64,000 nucleotides of DNA from Epithemia pelagica. Taxonomy: Eukaryota > Protista > Bacillariophyta. Position numbers and translations under genes: made by a program. The stretch spans positions 1,054,001 to 1,118,000 of the forward strand of contig OX337236.1 of the NCBI GenBank assembly GCA_946965045.2, read 5' to 3'. Shown piece after piece: positions 15,571 to 23,362 of this stretch (position 1 is the stretch's first letter; every line of letters begins with the position of its first letter). A model generated the notes under the pieces. It ran no database searches. It was not told the DNA's origin and saw nothing but the letters and a program-made list of their open reading frames with translations.

Positions 15571-16755
15571 TCAAAATGACATGTCCAATTCTTTCTCGTC
15601 TTGGCTTGTGGCCACATGGTCCAACGAAGTGAATAGGGGCGGCGACAAAGATGACGAGTTGCAAGTGGAATGAACCAATGCGGCGATAGGAACCATGGTG
15701 CTTGTCATGGCCGTTGGTATTGAGTTGGTTGAGGAAGCGCCAGGAACGACATGCATTTCCTGCCAGTCGTATATGCGTAAATTATAGAGGAGCATATGCG
15801 TTGTACCTTCCCACGGACCTTCGTGCTTATCCGTCAGTTGATTGTAGCAGCCGTTGACAATGTTATGATACAAATCCCATTGCGATTGACGATTGGCTTG
15901 TCCAACAATAATACATGTACTGCCACCACCCTGTTCATTACCCACATATTGAAGGTCGTTTTCCCTATCCTTGTGGGATAAAAGAGAGGAGGACTGCTTC
16001 CGAAATTGTTGCATGGCATCCATCAAGGGTCGAATCAGATAAAAGTAGTAGGCAAGATCAGTGCCCAGAATCACATGGAAGACATGTCGCAAGTCTCCGT
16101 GCAACTTTTCATTATGGGAATCTCTCCAGTCTAGCTGTCGACTCAGTATCTGCGTCGTGGAATTCTCTGTCTCATCAAAGGTTTTCGTCTGTTGTACAAT
16201 GTCATTGTCGTTGTCGGTCAAGTCGACACGATGAGCCATGCCTTGAGAGGCCAAGAGGCGTCCTGGCAATCCCAAACCAGCGCCCAGTTCCAACACGTTT
16301 TTGCCTTGAACCATGTTTTGCAGTGTTTTTGTTTGAGTCAAAATAGCTGCCGCGAGTGCACTCGGCCACAAGGTTGCACCCAATGGTGTCTCGTCCTGCA
16401 GAAACGGCAAGTTCAACGACTGTACTACTTCCTGCGACTCACCGCTGCTCTCACTGTCCACCGCTTTGAGGTTGTCACTCGCCGACACTTCAATCCCAAC
16501 GCGAATGTCATACCTTCTTTGGTCCTCATCTCGCACCTCTTGAATCCATCCAATACGTAGGGTTTCGTTCTTGGTGGTAGTCCGTAGCTGTTGTTGTTGC
16601 GTCACCAATGACGGACTCCAAGGTTCCAGCACACAGGTTCGGACCTGGAGACTGTCGACGACGGGAATCCACCAAGTATAGATGGCTACGATACGAGCCA
16701 TTACCGGGACCCACTGGAGGAGGTTTTGGTCGGTTGGTATTCGTTTGGATTTCAT
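15571..16755 (-). CDS. SAM-dependent methyltransferase (Methyltransf_16/METTL21-like) with N-terminal signal-like peptide
   Basis: GATLWPSA, NVLELGAGLG, LTDND, LDW, ILGTDLAY motifs. The start at MKSKRIP is inferred; the ORF-finder extension to 17544 is antisense to the HMGS gene. Confidence 0.88.
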   Translation of the reverse strand: MKSKRIPTDQNLLQWVPVMARIVAIYTWWIPVVDSLQVRTCVLEPWSPSLVTQQQQLRTTTKNETLRIGWIQEVRDEDQRRYDIRVGIEVSASDNLKAVDSESSGESQEVVQSLNLPFLQDETPLGATLWPSALAAAILTQTKTLQNMVQGKNVLELGAGLGLPGRLLASQGMAHRVDLTDNDNDIVQQTKTFDETENSTTQILSRQLDWRDSHNEKLHGDLRHVFHVILGTDLAYYFYLIRPLMDAMQQFRKQSSSLLSHKDRENDLQYVGNEQGGGSTCIIVGQANRQSQWDLYHNIVNGCYNQLTDKHEGPWEGTTHMLLYNLRIYDWQEMHVVPGASSTNSIPTAMTSTMVPIAALVHSTCNSSSLSPPLFTSLDHVATSQDEKELDMSF

Positions 16756-17274
16756 CGTGGCGTTTGAAAGAAAAGCAATGAGAAAAATTGTGGACTCATT
16801 CAAGAGTGGACAGGCACCACAACAAAAATTTGCGGAAGCCACAAAATAGTCTGTGGGTGTGGGGGCAGACTCGCCCCGCGCGCCATTATGTAATCCGCGA
16901 CCTCTCCGTCTCAGTCGCATTCCCCCAAGGGTGATGCCACCACGACCACGTCGCACGCGTCCAAGCCAAAGAAAGTCGCACCCAGTCGCGTATTGATGTC
17001 GTTCAGCTGTCGTCCACGCCACGCCAGCAACACCAGCAGTCAAAAACTTGGCTTGGGGACGAGTGCGACACGCACACACACAAAACCACGACGACGAATC
17101 GACCAAGAAGAAGCCAAACCTTGCACATCCGGGATTTTGTTCTTCCTGTTTGATTCTTGATACTTGCGAGAGTGACAGCAACGATCCAAGATCCAAACAG
17201 ATTCTTGGCAGTGGCATCAAGAATTGCAGCTTCTCTGTTTTGATGGTGAGAACCGGCTCATTTGAAACTAAGCC

Positions 17275-20200
17275 ATGACACTTCCCACCAATGCTACAAC
17301 ATCTTCCGACAATGCGCCGACGGCCGTCGGCATGCCAACCCCCAATGGCCACACGATGAACGACAAACATGTGGGAATCTTGGCCATGGAAGTGTACACA
17401 CCTCGTACATATGTGAAACAAAGTGCGTTGGAGGAACACAGTGGTATTCCGGCTGGAAAATACACGCTTGGTTTGGGTCAGGAAGCATTGGGAATTACGG
17501 GGGATGCCGAAGATGTCAACTCCCTCTGTTTGACCGTCGTCCACAGCCTGTTGGAAAAGTACGTACGCGACGTGATTGTTTCAGGAAACAAGAGCAGGAG
17601 ATTGTTGGACAAGAGCAGCGGGCTCTCTAGTGTGCTTTGTCGACCGCGATGGTTAGTGTTGTTTTGGTGTACAATGACGGCATTGTCCTGAATCTTTGTG
17701 ACAGAGGTGAATGGATATGGAGTTGGCGAGGATGCTGTGGTATCATGGTGTTGTATTCGTGTTCGAACCCTGATTGACATGGTCTTACGCCTGGTTCTTA
17801 CTTTTTCTCTGGCCTTTCCTGTTCCTTTCTTGTTGTCTTCCAGATATGACATTGACCCCCAATCCGTGGGTCGTTTAGAAGTGGGAACGGAAACATTGGT
17901 GGACAAATCCAAGTCCAGCAAGACTGTGTTGATGAGTTTGTTTCCTCACAATACGGACATGGAAGGTGCGACGGTTGTGAACGCGTGTTACGGCGGAACA
18001 TCGGCATTGCTCAATGCCTTTTATTGGTGTGAATCGAGTGGTTGGGATGGTCGCTATGCCATTGTCGTGGCGGCTGACATTGCCGCATATGCGCGTGGAC
18101 CGGCAAGACCCACTTCGGGCGTGGGAGCTGTGGCCTTTTTGGTGGGACGCGATGCTCCCTTGGCCTTTGCACCGCATTTGCGAGCCACACATGCCGCCCA
18201 TGTCTGGGATTTCTTCAAACCGGATCATACAGTGGAATATCCGACCGTCAATGGACAATTGTCTCAAGTTTGTTACTTTCAGGCACTCGAAGATTGCTAT
18301 GGACGATTTGCGCAAAAAATGGAGAGGGAACTGTCTACGAACGATGGAAAACAACAACTTTCCGAACAGAATGACGAAGCTGCCAGTGACGCATTTGACG
18401 CCACCTTTCCGGATTATTGGGTGTTTCATTCTCCCTACAACAAGCTGGTCCAGAAATCGTATGCCCGTCTCTTTTTGTTGGATGCACGACGCCGCTATCA
18501 GCAGAAACTGGCCCAGCGTCGACAAACCGGCAGTGGTATTGACGACGAGAAGAAGGATGAAGACTTGTTGTTAGCCTTGGGAAAGGGTCCCTTGCGTGAT
18601 TGGTTGGCCAAGCCCATTGAAGAAACCTATGCGGACAAGGCTTTGGAAAAAGCCTTGAAAGGAGTGTCTGGCAAAGATTATCAGATGCGATTGGCCGATG
18701 CCAATGCTGCTAGCGTTGTCGTTGGCAACACATATGCCGCTTCGGTCTTTTTGGGATTGGCGTCTTTGGTTGATCGGGCTGGACGAAGAGAGGAAAATGG
18801 ATTGACTCATGGCAAACGAATCTCCCTCTTTTCCTACGGATCCGGTGCCATGGCAACCATGTATTGCCTTAATGTGTAAGTTTATTGGTTGAATTTTTGC
18901 TGGTGGTTTGTTCGCATCCAATGTCAGTTTGGAGACTAACAATCCTCGATGAACCGCATGTTGTTAAACAAGCAGTCGCAATCCCACTATGCAGACGAAG
19001 TTCACCTGTCAGTACATTGCAGAAACGATGCAGCTGACGGAACGCCTTGCCAACCGAGAGGAAGTTCATCCCGGAGATTTGGATCACGCCTTGGAAACGC
19101 GTGCTCGCATGCATCGTGCTGGAGCACCGTATAGTCCAGTCTACCCCACGGTCGGTCGTTTATTCCCTGGCACGTATTATCTTAATGGCATTGACTCTCA
19201 ATGGCAGAGAACCTATAGTAGAGTTCCGTTGGATGCACCTTTGGAAGTTCCGGTAAAGAACGGGCAGACAAATGGAGATAAATCCCCTCATCATGTCCCA
19301 TTGGCACCACCCATCGTACTACGTTTGGCACAACACGACGCCGTGTCTCATCCAGTCACGGGAAAGCTTCAGGTGATGAGCAGCACCGAGGAAGGAAACG
19401 CGGACCAACATACCGAGGTTCGCCGACGCATTGCCTGTGTTATTACAGGAACTGCTGCTGGTCTTCCGGGAGGTGAACAGGTGTTTAACGAGAATAATAT
19501 GGAGCGTCTCATTGCCGGAGAGCAATGTATTGGACCCATTTCGGCCGAGGCTAAAGAGGCGATGCTCGAAAAGAATGTTGTACAAATTCGCAAGAATGCA
19601 GACAAATCATTGGAGAAGGTCAAAGTGAATAATGAAGAAACTGTCATCAAACTGGCTGCTCAGTTGGGATCATTTTGCTTAACTGGAGCTTACGGCGTCC
19701 CAGCCGGATTGGCTCAAACGATGGACTTGGCTGCTCAAGTGGCGGTCGCCGCAGGAATGGAAGCATTGAAAAACGCTGGTTTGGTGAGTGGGAAATCCAG
19801 CGATCCTGAGGAGTGGAAGTTACCAGAACGATATCGTGATGGAACGGGTGTCGTGTACGCTAGTTCCTTCCCGGCAATGGATGCCGCTGTGGGTGAGGTG
19901 ATGCGATTCCTCAAGTCCAAAACGGTTGGTGCGGCGGGTGCCATGAGGCTTGTGTCAGCTTTGCGTGAACGAATGGCCCTGAATCTTGCCGCGATGGACA
20001 ACGGCGACGGATCTTCCCTTTCAGATGAAGATGAAGCTGCCTTTGCCCATTTGATTGCTCGATGTGGTCAGATATCACAGTCATCTGTTTCTAGCGAAGA
20101 TCAGCATGCATATGAATTTGATCGTAAATTCTTATTCCGTGTGTTGGTTTTGGGAAATGCTCAACTGGCACAATTAGCTGGTTGCCGTGGACCCAATACT

Positions 20201-21031
20201 CAAACCAATGCCGCATGTGCAGGAACCACACAAGCCATTGCCATGGCGCAAGACATGCTCATTTCGGGTCGCGCGGATCGTGTGGTTGTTGTTGCAGGCG
20301 ACAATGCCTCTGGCGATGTCTTGCTTCCGTGGCTTGGTTCAGGATTCCGGGCTTTGGGTGCCGCAACGATTGAATCGGCTGTTGAAGATGCCGCCCTTCC
20401 TTTTGACAAGCGTCGTTCAGGTTTGTTGTTGGGCGCAGGTGGCATTGGTATGGTTCTGGAAACAGAAATGAGCATGCTCGCACGGAAACAGCAAGCTTCG
20501 CCAAGAAGTTTTGAGGTGAAGGCCCGTTTGCTCCATACTCAGTACTCAAATTCTGCTTTCCACGGGGCTGCGTTGGATCGCAACCATATTGGTTCCGAGC
20601 TCAAACGTTTCTTACAAGACATTGAATTGGTGCACGGTATTAGCAAAGCGGAGGTGGCTACGCATGGAGTATACTTTTCTCATGAAACGTGTACCCACGC
20701 TACCTCTGCCACCAGTTGTGCCGGTAATGAAGTGGCGGCGCTTCGTTTTGCCTTTGGAGACGAACTCTTGTCCAAAATGTTGATTCTAAATACCAAAGGC
20801 TATACAGGACATCCCATGGGTGTATCTTTTGAAGACGTCACTGCCGTCGAAGTCCTTCTGCGACAAAAAGTTCCTCCCGTGCCAAACTACAAGGAGAAGG
20901 ATGAATACTTGGGAGATGGATTGAAGATTTCCCAAGGCGGGCCTTATGCATGCCGATATGCCATTCGTTTTGCGGCTGGATTCGGCAGCCAGGTTGCATT
21001 TGCGCTCTATGCCACCGCACAGTACGAATAG
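17275..21031 (+). CDS. HMGS: HMG-CoA synthase fused to a C-terminal beta-ketoacyl synthase domain (1123 aa); introns 17559..17843 and 18876..18975
   Basis: HMGS motifs GILAMEVYTP, RLEVGTETLVDKSKS, NACYGGT, FHSPYNKLVQKS, FSYGSG. KS motifs GPNTQTNAACAG (Cys at 20216), FSHET, KGYTGHPMG, FAAGFG. Both introns are GT-AG and restore one continuous frame (284+1032+2056=3372 nt). Confidence 0.92.
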
Positions 21032-21814
21032 ATGGAAGTCAGTCCCAAGTTACTCCTCTCCATGCGACATAGTTGACAAAAGGACAAGGCTGAAGGAACA
21101 GAGACCGAGGTGACTACCTAGGGCCTCGACAAGTATATGGTTGTCACCATATGTTGTGGAGCTCTCTCACAAGGCAAGAGTTTGCATTTGAGGATATTAC
21201 GCATACACCGAGAGGTACGATCAAATTGTGTACCAGTGCTAATCCATTTTAAGGAAAGACGTTATTACATGAGCTCGGATTAGGAAATAAAGCTATCGCA
21301 GAAAACGATTTTCCCATCAAATAGATTGCGCACTGGAAACATCGCTGCAGAGAAATGCATTAGGTGGGAGTAAGACGGTTAACGACACAAGAAACCAAAT
21401 GCGTTCCATTTCACCGAATACCTTGTTGGACGTCCAAATTAAACAGAAAACTGCTCTGTGATCCATGCAAACTCTAAAACAACATATTCAACACAGTCTA
21501 TTTCAAGTATGTCAGACTTAGTAAATATTCTCCGCTTATCGCTTTATATGAATACACTGCAAAGAGGCAAGATACCATCCACCTCAAGATACCCCATTCT
21601 AGAAGGACATCAAAATCAATCATAGTATAGGTTCCAGTTCGACCAAGCCGAAGGAAGCAATCCATTCAGTGTCTGTTCAAGGGAGAGGAATCCACCCCCC
21701 AACCAACCAAGCGTCTACGCGGCGAGCCCTGAATGCTGAACTCCGGTTCACCTTCTTTGTCACTGGCGTTCCTATGTGGCGGGTCCTGTGTGTCTCGGAC
21801 CTGGTGGCGTTTTC

Positions 21815-23362
21815 TTACGCTGGCACAGGTTCCGCTTGCGCAACAGGAAGCATTGCTAGTTCTGACTCTGTCATCGTAATCTCTCTGTCTTCAGACGCAT
21901 GAAATGAGACGTGCGTAGAACAGGTATTGTCTTTATTCAAACTGGCTCCACTTTTTTGGGAAGAGCCCTGACCAGAGAGTACTTCGTTGTATCTCCACCA
22001 TTCAAAGGGGGCATTGCCGGCTATCCTTCGGACGCGCCACTGTTTGGACCTTCGATGAGCACGTCGGCTCCACCAATAAAAGAACAAGAGTGAAGGAAAC
22101 AGGATAAAGATGGTTCCAGCACCAACGAGAATGGCCACAAAGCCTGATAAGGCGGCGGCGATCAATACTGAGATAACGGCAAAGAGAATATACCAGCAAC
22201 CCACAAGGGTAACTCCTTCAACTTTGTCATTTCGTATACACATGAGACAACAAACCACAAAAAGTCCGCAAACCGAAACAGGAAGAAGTATCCACAGGAA
22301 GTTAGGGAAGAAATAATCGTAACCAGTTTCGTAACAAGTCCACTTGTGGCAAAAACTGGCACTCTCGGAATCTTCATCCAAGCATTCGCAGGTGGCCATT
22401 TCAAATTCTTCTTCAGAATCCGTCTCGCCAATCCATCTTCTACAATATCTCTCATTCGAACTTAGTATTAAACACTGATAATGTTCGTATTCTCGAAAAT
22501 CAAGATTATGCTCATCATATTCTGCGCACCAGGGAAGGGATCATCCACAGTAGTCGAACGTTGTTAGCATCATCCTCTCATACAGAATCCCTTGAAGATA
22601 TGAGTTAAACAATCTCTTCTTACCTTCTTGTTTCCATTCCAAACATGCGCCTACATCGTTGACTTTGGTACATTCGGCTTCCGAGAATTCAATCTCCATG
22701 TGAGGTGTATAACTGCAATCGTAGCACTGCGCATCTCGGCAACACTTTTTTAAACAAAAGGTAGGTTGAGAGCAATTGGGAGAACATCCGTGGCATCTTC
22801 CATCACACTTCTTGGTCTCTCGTTGCTTGGTTTTCCAGGTTTTGCAATATTTGTACCCCAATTCGGTTTTGGCTACCGATGTACAATTGGAATAACCAAC
22901 CTCATATTCATTGTGCGATTGCTCATGGGAAGTCCAGGACATGCAAACATTTCCATCGAAATTGGTACCTTGACATTCATAATGCTCCCACTCATCATCC
23001 CAGTCGATTCCCTTGGCCAACATGGGATAGCCACCATTGTAGAATGGAAAGGAGTTACAAGTCATACCCACTCGCCGTGCCACATCCTCGTCTTTACAAT
23101 GAAGTACTTCCATATATCTTCCGTTGCTTGGATCTACAAATGTTTCCGTTACCATTGAAGCGTTCCCATACTGACACCGACTTATGTCCCGACAAAAGAG
23201 ATTGATGGATCGCTTCTTGCGGCAAGCAAAATTTTCACGGGGATCGAACAAGGTATTGCAACGCCAGGCATTGTTCACTTGAGGAATTTCGTCTTGCATG
23301 TGACCTGAACATTGAGCCGCTGAGAGTAACGACAGCAGCGGAAGCAATAGTTTCATTCTCAT
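21815..23362 (-). CDS. Signal peptide + Cys/Trp-rich repeat ectodomain + C-terminal multi-TM segment (481 aa); intron 22522..22623
   Basis: MRMKLLLPLLSLLSAAQC signal. The GTAAGA...GCAG intron joins ORFs 22541..23362 and 21815..22399 in frame (739+707=1446 nt). Three to four hydrophobic helices lie near the C-terminus. Confidence 0.8.

Follow-up and report, generated by a model that had tools for sequence, protein, structure and literature searches.

NphT7, encoded in a mevalonate gene cluster of Streptomyces, converts acetyl-CoA and malonyl-CoA to acetoacetyl-CoA for HMG-CoA synthase (HMGS; HMG-CoA is 3-hydroxy-3-methylglutaryl-CoA). In the archaeal complex of thiolase, HMGS and a DUF35 protein and in MvaE, the Enterococcus fusion of thiolase and HMG-CoA reductase, acetoacetyl-CoA formation is physically coupled to the next mevalonate enzymes. 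In polyketide beta-branching cassettes, a ketosynthase (KS) with an active-site serine works with an acyl carrier protein (ACP), an HMGS homologue and an enoyl-CoA hydratase (ECH), and all substrates are ACP-bound. A pairing of HMGS and KS within one protein was listed by Morris et al. 2009 (PMC2705460, Table 2) as a multifunctional protein of Phytophthora sojae, Thalassiosira pseudonana and Phaeodactylum tricornutum, and the domain pair was tabulated there as older than the divergence of diatoms from oomycetes. It is a table entry alone, without domain analysis, expression data, KS phylogeny or a proposed function. Shulse & Allen 2011 (PMC3098273) further described the Type R secondary-lipid synthase, a KS-MAT-CLF-ACP3-6-KR protein, which turned out to be relevant for the KS part. 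Here, we characterize a gene at positions 17275-21031 (+) of a 64,000-nucleotide stretch from the diatom Epithemia pelagica (GenBank contig OX337236.1, positions 1,054,001 to 1,118,000; hereafter the window). It encodes the same two-domain protein and is a further ortholog of the fusion already catalogued in 2009. Our analysis adds transcript-level confirmation in Epithemia pelagica together with the correct placement of introns and junction, a FabF-fold model and an invariant catalytic set for the KS domain, here called KSx, and a link of KSx to the 'CLF' (chain-length factor) position of Pfa-like megasynthases, including a residue signature that distinguishes ACP-linked from ACP-less members.

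The locus is a single nuclear diatom gene that is transcribed and spliced to one mRNA of about 1,120 codons. Exon 1 (17275-17558, +) starts with the ATG and comprises the 94 N-terminal HMGS codons plus two bases (HMG_CoA_synt_N, 1.8e-19), while exon 2 (17844-18875, +) encodes what remains of the N domain and the greater part of the C domain. Between them lies intron 1 (17559-17843, +; 285 bp, GTACGT donor and CAG acceptor), which was absent from the initial annotation. Intron 2 (18876-18975, +; 100 bp) has a GTAAGT donor, an ACTAAC element at 18935-18940 and a CAG acceptor, and contains an in-frame TAA at 18877-18879. Exon 3 (18976-21031, +) encodes the HMGS tail, a linker and KSx and ends with a TAG stop codon (21029-21031, +), followed by a 3' untranslated region (UTR) that extends to at least 21165 in contigs of sequencing run X5. 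The HMGS C-terminal domain is completed by the first ca. 82 residues of exon 3 (18976-19222, +), which match positions 209-279 of 280 of the HMG_CoA_synt_C profile (2e-09) and positions 387-456 of 457 of TIGR01833. The subsequent linker of ca. 67 residues (19223-19423, +) gave no Pfam match and is followed by the 535-aa KSx domain (19424-21028, +). The initial annotation had recognized intron 2 and its splice signals correctly but saw in it the joint between HMGS and KS, whereas it lies within the HMGS C-terminal domain. Similarly, the 680-aa region it had described downstream does hold a complete KS, but only about 535 aa belong to it and the rest is HMGS tail and linker.

Contigs from runs X3, X5 and X6, all of the same organism, were aligned to positions 17100-21300. 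The stretch was found in four runs of one organism and, at a small share, in two marine metatranscriptomes. Both introns (GT..AG) were precisely missing from X5 contigs (17559-17843 and 18876-18975), which bears out the predicted splicing. Record 9 of this run connects 17108-17558 to 17844-18301, and record 11 (2580 nt) connects 18333-18875 to 18976-21012 and thus covers HMGS exon 2 through nearly the whole KS. Intron 1 was exactly absent from an X5 contig at a depth of 52.9, and only one 151-nt X5 contig, at a depth of 2.5, entered it. In case of run X3, a single 3849-nt contig reads through both introns, X6 contigs likewise cover the introns, and no joined, intron-less form was present among the X3 or X6 contigs. 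Judged from how the contigs handle the introns, X5 is likely RNA-derived and X3 and X6 are DNA-like, the library type not being on record. Transcripts ending at the in-intron stop at 18879, or separate mRNAs for the two parts, either of which the initial annotation had named as a refutation, were not seen. In the 5' UTR region (17108-17300), the X5 contigs without introns show, relative to the assembly, insertions of 3 bp and 12 bp behind 17122 and 17163 and several single-nucleotide polymorphisms, some of them in common with an X6 contig, which points to a second allele or strain.

Transcript-derived proteins from other diatoms have the same organization. Complete HMGS plus KS proteins of 966-1116 aa are present in MMETSP/EukProt for several species, and one of these orthologs, P0005 (1076 aa, transcript-derived), is colinear with all three exons in tblastn; the 4-residue gap separating its exon 2 and exon 3 matches corresponds to the residues encoded by the predicted junction. 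Because HMGS and KS are joined by uninterrupted coding sequence inside exon 3, no splicing event is needed for the fusion. An artificial joining of two neighboring genes through read-through or assembly error has a negligible chance of being correct: public gene callers often split the locus, as seen from the 393-aa and 680-aa open reading frames (ORFs) of the window and the adjacent models SGILL_001183 and SGILL_001182, but the HMGS domain runs 82 residues into the ORF of the KS, a spliced contig covers both parts, and dozens of full-length transcripts or gene models exist in other species. We regard the gene structure and the fusion as practically certain. The frequent splitting by gene callers may be the reason why the fusion has been overlooked, and several diatom records at NCBI that hold the full fusion are named HMG-CoA synthase.

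Database searches were run exon by exon, and P0005 was used for the full-length fold. The HMGS part gave strong matches to both Pfam domains of this family, PF01154 (HMG_CoA_synt_N; 70.7 bits for exon 1 and 150.4 bits, 5.9e-44, for exon 2) and PF08540 (HMG_CoA_synt_C; 160.9 bits, 6.6e-47, for exon 2 and 37.9 bits for exon 3). Exon 2 alone scored 348.4 bits against the eukaryotic HMGS equivalog TIGR01833 of NCBIfam, well above its cut-off of 286.2, and positions 3-456 of the 457 model positions are tiled across the three exons. The GTE, NACYGG and FHSPYNK motifs, whose Glu, Cys and His are taken as the catalytic residues from what is established for HMGS, are all located in exon 2 and stand in columns that are at least 90% conserved among 41 full-length fusions. 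Going by these matches, the HMGS part is a bona fide eukaryotic enzyme of the mevalonate type. This bears directly on a polyketide-type beta-branching function, raised in the initial annotation, in which KS and HMGS homologue would act on an ACP-bound beta-keto intermediate. Bacterial cassettes do pair a KS-like protein with an HMGS homologue, but the HMGS passes the equivalog cut-off of the eukaryotic mevalonate enzyme, the KS retains its Cys, and the protein has no ACP or enoyl-CoA hydratase domain, so that we regard beta-branching as very improbable.

A search for a separate, unfused diatom HMGS returned mostly split gene calls of the fused locus. Standalone HMGS proteins (P0289, P0291 and P0333) were found on contigs not assigned to diatoms. 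Intronless standalone HMGS genes for proteins of 498-547 aa lie on three compact contigs (L003:327-4181, L004:2549-5617 and L005:1077-3626). Their products show ca. 61-65% identity to exon 2 of the window gene and have a natural C-terminus without KS, and each gene adjoins a cis-prenyltransferase gene. They represent either non-fused relatives or a compact-genome lineage.

KSx adopts a well-defined fold in our AlphaFold model, which was based on an alignment of 52 sequences and reached a predicted local distance difference test (pLDDT) score of 92.1 and a predicted template modeling score (pTM) of 0.89. The top 50 PDB matches in Foldseek were all FabF/KAS II or mitochondrial KS structures with a probability of 1.00. 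For the best of them, FabF, TM scores by target were 0.88-0.90 (mostly 0.84-0.90 over the top 50) at about 20% sequence identity. Compared with FabF, KSx has ca. 90-120 extra residues, mostly in a helical insert at about residues 152-240. PF00109 was recognized with 45.9 bits (cut-off 20.8) while PF02801 was not reported; FabF models matched at 1e-28, yet KSx reached only 99 bits against the FabF equivalog TIGR03150 with its cut-off of 494. Judged from these scores, KSx belongs to the KS enzymes without being an ortholog of FabF. A weak pointer to an affinity with fungal fatty acid synthase-type KS domains, obtained from a feature search in Protein Atlas, was set aside as Foldseek ranked none of these above FabF.

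All catalytic residues of a decarboxylating condensing enzyme are present. Cys265 (NAAC; codon 20216-20218, +), His420 (SHET; codon 20681-20683, +), Lys458 and His463 (NTKGYTGHP; codons within 20795-20812, +) and Phe520 (AGFGS) are invariant in 157 out of 157 sequences of the family alignment, and Cys, His, Lys and His are also invariant across the 41 full-length fusions. Cys265 shares an alignment column with the Cys of FabF and of canonical KS domains, the SHET motif falls on the FabF HGT motif in a profile-to-PDB alignment, and Lys458 and His463 are aligned to the TKSMTGH motif of FabF, so the triad named in the initial annotation (NAAC, SHET, TGHP) stood up in full. Directly after the first catalytic His, KSx has an invariant Glu421 where FabF has Gly. 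A pairwise HMMER alignment to Vibrio cholerae FabF had offered the His of a THATS motif as first catalytic His; it was rejected since this residue is unconserved in the 157-sequence alignment and the profile alignment leads to the SHET His. A Cys-His-His triad is the mark of decarboxylating condensing enzymes and not of thiolases. Consistently, the window protein gave no Thiolase_N or Thiolase_C match in Pfam at E <= 0.01, and ACP_syn_III produced just a 36-residue match around the KSx Cys. A Pfam search of the three exons detected no ACP, AT or reductase domain, in line with what had been noted initially. Further, Phe149 of KSx, present in at least 90% of the family, replaces the FabF chain-length residue Ile108 (GSGIGG of E. 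coli FabF, b1095, NC_000913.3, against ASSFPA of KSx). The I108F mutant of Bacillus subtilis FabF was among the PDB matches (4ls6); this substitution presumably limits the acyl pocket to short chains, which we treat as a hint only.

This degree of conservation argues against KSx being a catalytically inactive module for dimerization or regulation of HMGS. In favor of such a module, known relatives of either fold are obligate dimers, and the fusion could thus form higher-order assemblies. However, neither the catalytic residues nor the Phe gate vary anywhere in a very deep phylogeny, and domain identity among diatoms is ca. 70-85%, a pattern typical of an enzyme under purifying selection. We consider a purely structural role quite improbable.

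In the full-length monomer model of P0005 (pTM 0.53), two well-folded domains are separated by a region of low confidence (residues 520-554, pLDDT <50), and the protein thus resembles a pair of enzymes connected by a flexible tether. Over the 41 full-length fusions, conservation is strong in either half. No hidden carrier or other domain was detected in the linker by Pfam. The linker contains the motif LAPPIVLRL (19301-19327), in which L-A-P is kept in at least 90% of the 41 aligned fusions and which lies under a short, low-confidence helix in the P0005 model; docking, oligomerization or regulation are candidate roles.

An exhaustive search of representatives yielded 489 cluster representatives related to KSx at E < 1e-30. 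Fusions of HMGS and KSx were found in diatoms, Phaeothamnion and Pythium insidiosum, confirming the suspicion of the initial annotation that other stramenopiles would have them, as was also tabulated in 2009 (PMC2705460). The KS part of the window protein is 70-87% identical to that of other diatom fusions, whereas its identity to the counterpart in the Pythium fusion is 47%. KSx without HMGS occurs in Aureoumbra, Pterocystis, Prymnesium, Gloeochaete and Cyanophora, and some eukaryotic relatives are fused to a methyltransferase instead of HMGS; the extra domains of these non-fusion eukaryotic relatives (methyltransferase, unassigned extensions) gave no functional clue. By far the most numerous relatives are proteins of 2000-4000 aa with a KS-AT-KSx-ACP(n)-KR-DH-PPT architecture. 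Scanning of prokaryotic genomes led to at least 568 confirmed matches, and the 80 loci that were kept belong to Myxococcota, Solirubrobacterales, other Actinomycetota, Chloroflexota (including Roseiflexus), Acidobacteriota, Elusimicrobia, Heimdallarchaeota and Thermoplasmatota. In Pythium insidiosum, one 1550-aa protein (P0278) has a polycystin cation-channel region added to the HMGS-KS fusion that is absent from a 961-aa sister model, and P0278 is probably a merged gene model. A JGI metagenome contig of 1.13 Mb (L001:5983-19828) encodes a 3275-aa KS-AT-KSx-ACP4-KR-DH-PPT megasynthase, P0142. Its gene lies directly 3' of three acetyl-CoA carboxylase subunit genes, with the gene of an Arf-family small GTPase close by. 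Close relatives of P0142 are labelled as Heimdallarchaeota/Asgard metagenome-assembled genomes and the nearby GTPase looks Asgard-like; the contig may represent an archaeon equipped with both a malonyl-CoA supply of its own and a Pfa-like lipid synthase.

The origin of KSx was addressed with a quick maximum-likelihood tree (LG+G4, SH-aLRT support only, no bootstraps) rooted on canonical KS domains. All HMGS fusions together with the Pterocystis and Aureoumbra types formed one clade with a support of 100. It lies inside a clade of ACP-less eukaryotic KSx (support 100), itself nested among the KSx domains of megasynthases. Branching within the fusion clade is poorly resolved, and the fusion may have arisen once and later undergone fission. 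As placed by the tree and domain order, KSx descends from the domain located between the acyltransferase and the ACP repeats in prokaryotic Pfa-like megasynthases. Every ACP-linked KSx that was examined has His245, Arg383, Pro425, Ser432 and a basic C-terminus. ACP-less eukaryotic KSx, on the other hand, have Asn245 in all sampled sequences, have lost Arg383 in all but one (Ala, Ser, Leu or Val instead) and mostly carry Cys432. At positions 245, 383, 425 and 432, the window protein has Asn, Ala, His and Cys, and other fusions likewise. Further, Arg309, which adjoins the conserved Gly-Phe of an active-site loop, is a gain common to the fusion clade and the standalone KSx closest to it, the Aureoumbra group having Asn instead. 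The pattern of clade-specific residues fits a change of substrate carrier.

This ancestry also raises the possibility that KSx acts in another pathway, either on lipids or polyketides with a free-standing carrier or on longer acyl-CoA primers, and that the fusion to HMGS merely provides co-expression or a shared supply of acetyl and malonyl units. The prokaryotic relatives, which form part of Pfa-like 'secondary lipid' megasynthases that carry ACP repeats (PMC3098273), the eukaryotic KSx proteins that stand alone or are fused to a methyltransferase, and the lack of a confident predicted contact between HMGS and KSx are all compatible with such a role. On the other hand, the HMGS partner is unchanged from oomycetes to diatoms, no ACP, AT, KR or DH is attached, and the ACP-less clade is devoid of the Arg that ACP-linked members conserve. 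We rate a role outside the mevalonate pathway as unlikely. Another possibility is that KSx mainly decarboxylates malonyl thioesters, similar to a chain-initiation factor, and supplies acetyl units to HMGS without condensation. Decarboxylating KS-like partners are generally known to go with HMGS homologues in polyketide beta-branching cassettes, and the domain at the same position of the Type R Pfa-like synthase was named a chain-length factor (PMC3098273). However, known decarboxylase-only KS variants have Gln or Ser in place of the Cys that is invariant in KSx (157/157), and cytosolic acetyl-CoA is not obviously limiting, which makes decarboxylation without condensation improbable.

In line with the initial annotation, we propose instead that KSx produces acetoacetyl-CoA from acetyl-CoA and malonyl-CoA, which is then passed to the tethered HMGS; on the indirect sequence evidence given here, this falls only a little short of an even chance. 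KSx would be an initiating condensing enzyme whose substrates have changed from ACP-bound to CoA-bound ones. Its Cys would be loaded with acetyl from acetyl-CoA, and KSx would then decarboxylate malonyl-CoA and free acetoacetyl-CoA, which the tethered HMGS would condense with further acetyl-CoA to yield HMG-CoA. The loss of CO2 would result in an irreversible entry to the cytosolic mevalonate pathway, replacing the unfavorable thiolase step or operating beside it. This mechanism is suggested by the combination of a decarboxylating-type triad with an HMGS partner that consumes exactly the C4 product of such a KS, by a cytosolic setting without a known ACP together with the loss of the ACP-associated signature, and, as a hint, by Phe at the chain-length position. 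The cytosolic location is itself probable as no signal-like hydrophobic stretch was found at the N-terminus of the sequence. Malonyl-CoA occurs in the cytosol, and we know of no cytosolic type II ACP.

Several points weigh against this proposal. The usual substrate of FabF-type KS enzymes is malonyl-ACP and not malonyl-CoA, and all KSx relatives of characterized type adjoin ACPs. Phe149 is found family-wide, including in megasynthase KSx domains, and is thus no particular feature of the fusion. Closely related KSx proteins stand alone in Aureoumbra, Pterocystis, Prymnesium and glaucophytes, so KSx can work without covalently attached HMGS. Since the full-length monomer model (P0005, pTM 0.53) shows no confident domain-domain contact, channeling would depend on tethering alone. 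Reviews keep a conventional thiolase (AACT) followed by HMGS for diatoms. Finally, we found neither a biochemical characterization of the fusion, as the initial annotation had surmised, nor biochemistry on any other family member in the full-text literature, where only the 2009 table row and the description of the Type R 'CLF' are relevant.

A more general form of the proposal, which we put forward tentatively and consider possible but on the doubtful side, is that KSx represents a new FabF-fold class of CoA-dependent acetoacetyl-CoA synthases. The cytosolic mevalonate pathway of diatoms, other ochrophytes and oomycetes would then begin with an irreversible, malonyl-CoA-consuming condensation by the bifunctional KS-HMGS and not with thiolase, and this function would be shared by the standalone KSx of haptophytes, glaucophytes, centrohelids and pelagophytes. 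The KSx module would have been recruited from a prokaryotic Pfa-like megasynthase and would have shed its dependence on ACP. If this is true, the thiolase first step given in textbooks would be incorrect or incomplete for an entire supergroup of eukaryotes, the flux to isoprenoids and sterols would be coupled to acetyl-CoA carboxylase, and a new class of enzymes for irreversible acetoacetyl-CoA synthesis would become usable in metabolic engineering. Diatoms contribute a major part of marine primary production and serve as a chassis in terpenoid engineering, while oomycetes include major pathogens of crops and animals. The fusion is further a Rosetta-stone clue to the function of an uncharacterized KS family found widely among protists and in the "secondary lipid" megasynthases of prokaryotes. 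Even under another mechanism, a domain that is so conserved in primary metabolism and has no assigned function would mark a clear gap.

The flanking genes encode a divergently oriented lysine methyltransferase and a membrane protein with no assigned function, and give no pathway context. The upstream gene (15571-16800, -) carries a Methyltransf_16 (lysine methyltransferase) domain; a mechanically called ORF of 657 aa extends antisense into HMGS exon 1, and the real gene is probably shorter. Downstream, a 194-aa ORF (21815-22399, -) with hydrophobic stretches and no Pfam match may encode an orphan membrane protein.

Compared with known systems, the likeness to polyketide beta-branching cassettes consists in a KS-family and an HMGS-family protein occurring together. 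The window protein differs in that it keeps the Cys, has no PP-binding/ACP or ECH domain and carries a primary-metabolism HMGS, and neither of its flanking genes is a cassette partner. The archaeal complex and MvaE use a true, non-decarboxylative thiolase, whereas the window protein has a covalently tethered KS of the decarboxylating type and no DUF35. NphT7 resembles KSx in the proposed chemistry and in pathway logic, the shared activity being hypothetical. NphT7 is a KAS III (FabH-like) enzyme with a Cys-His-Asn triad while KSx has the FabF fold and Cys-His-His, so the two would be analogous and not homologous at the family level. FabF/KAS II (E. coli b1095; PDB 4ls5, 2gfw and 4jrh) has the fold, the Cys-His-His-Lys set and the Phe gate in common with KSx, which in turn is set apart by an identity of only ca. 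20%, the insert, Glu in place of Gly after the first His, Phe in place of Ile108 and no evident ACP partner. The 'CLF' domains of Type R synthases are the nearest non-eukaryotic relatives of KSx, with 38-45% identity over residues 5-530 and E values of about 1e-100, and the taxa with Type R synthases overlap with those of our KSx scan in Roseiflexus, Acidobacteriota and Elusimicrobia. Type R domains, flanked by an acyltransferase and by ACP repeats, have retained His245, Arg383 and Ser432, whereas KSx of the window is ACP-less, is preceded by HMGS, forms the C-terminal end of the protein and does not carry this signature. Unlike a classical CLF, however, the KSx at the Type R 'CLF' position keeps its Cys, and it has the helical insert, Phe149, the invariant His-Glu-Thr and the full catalytic set in common with KSx of the window.

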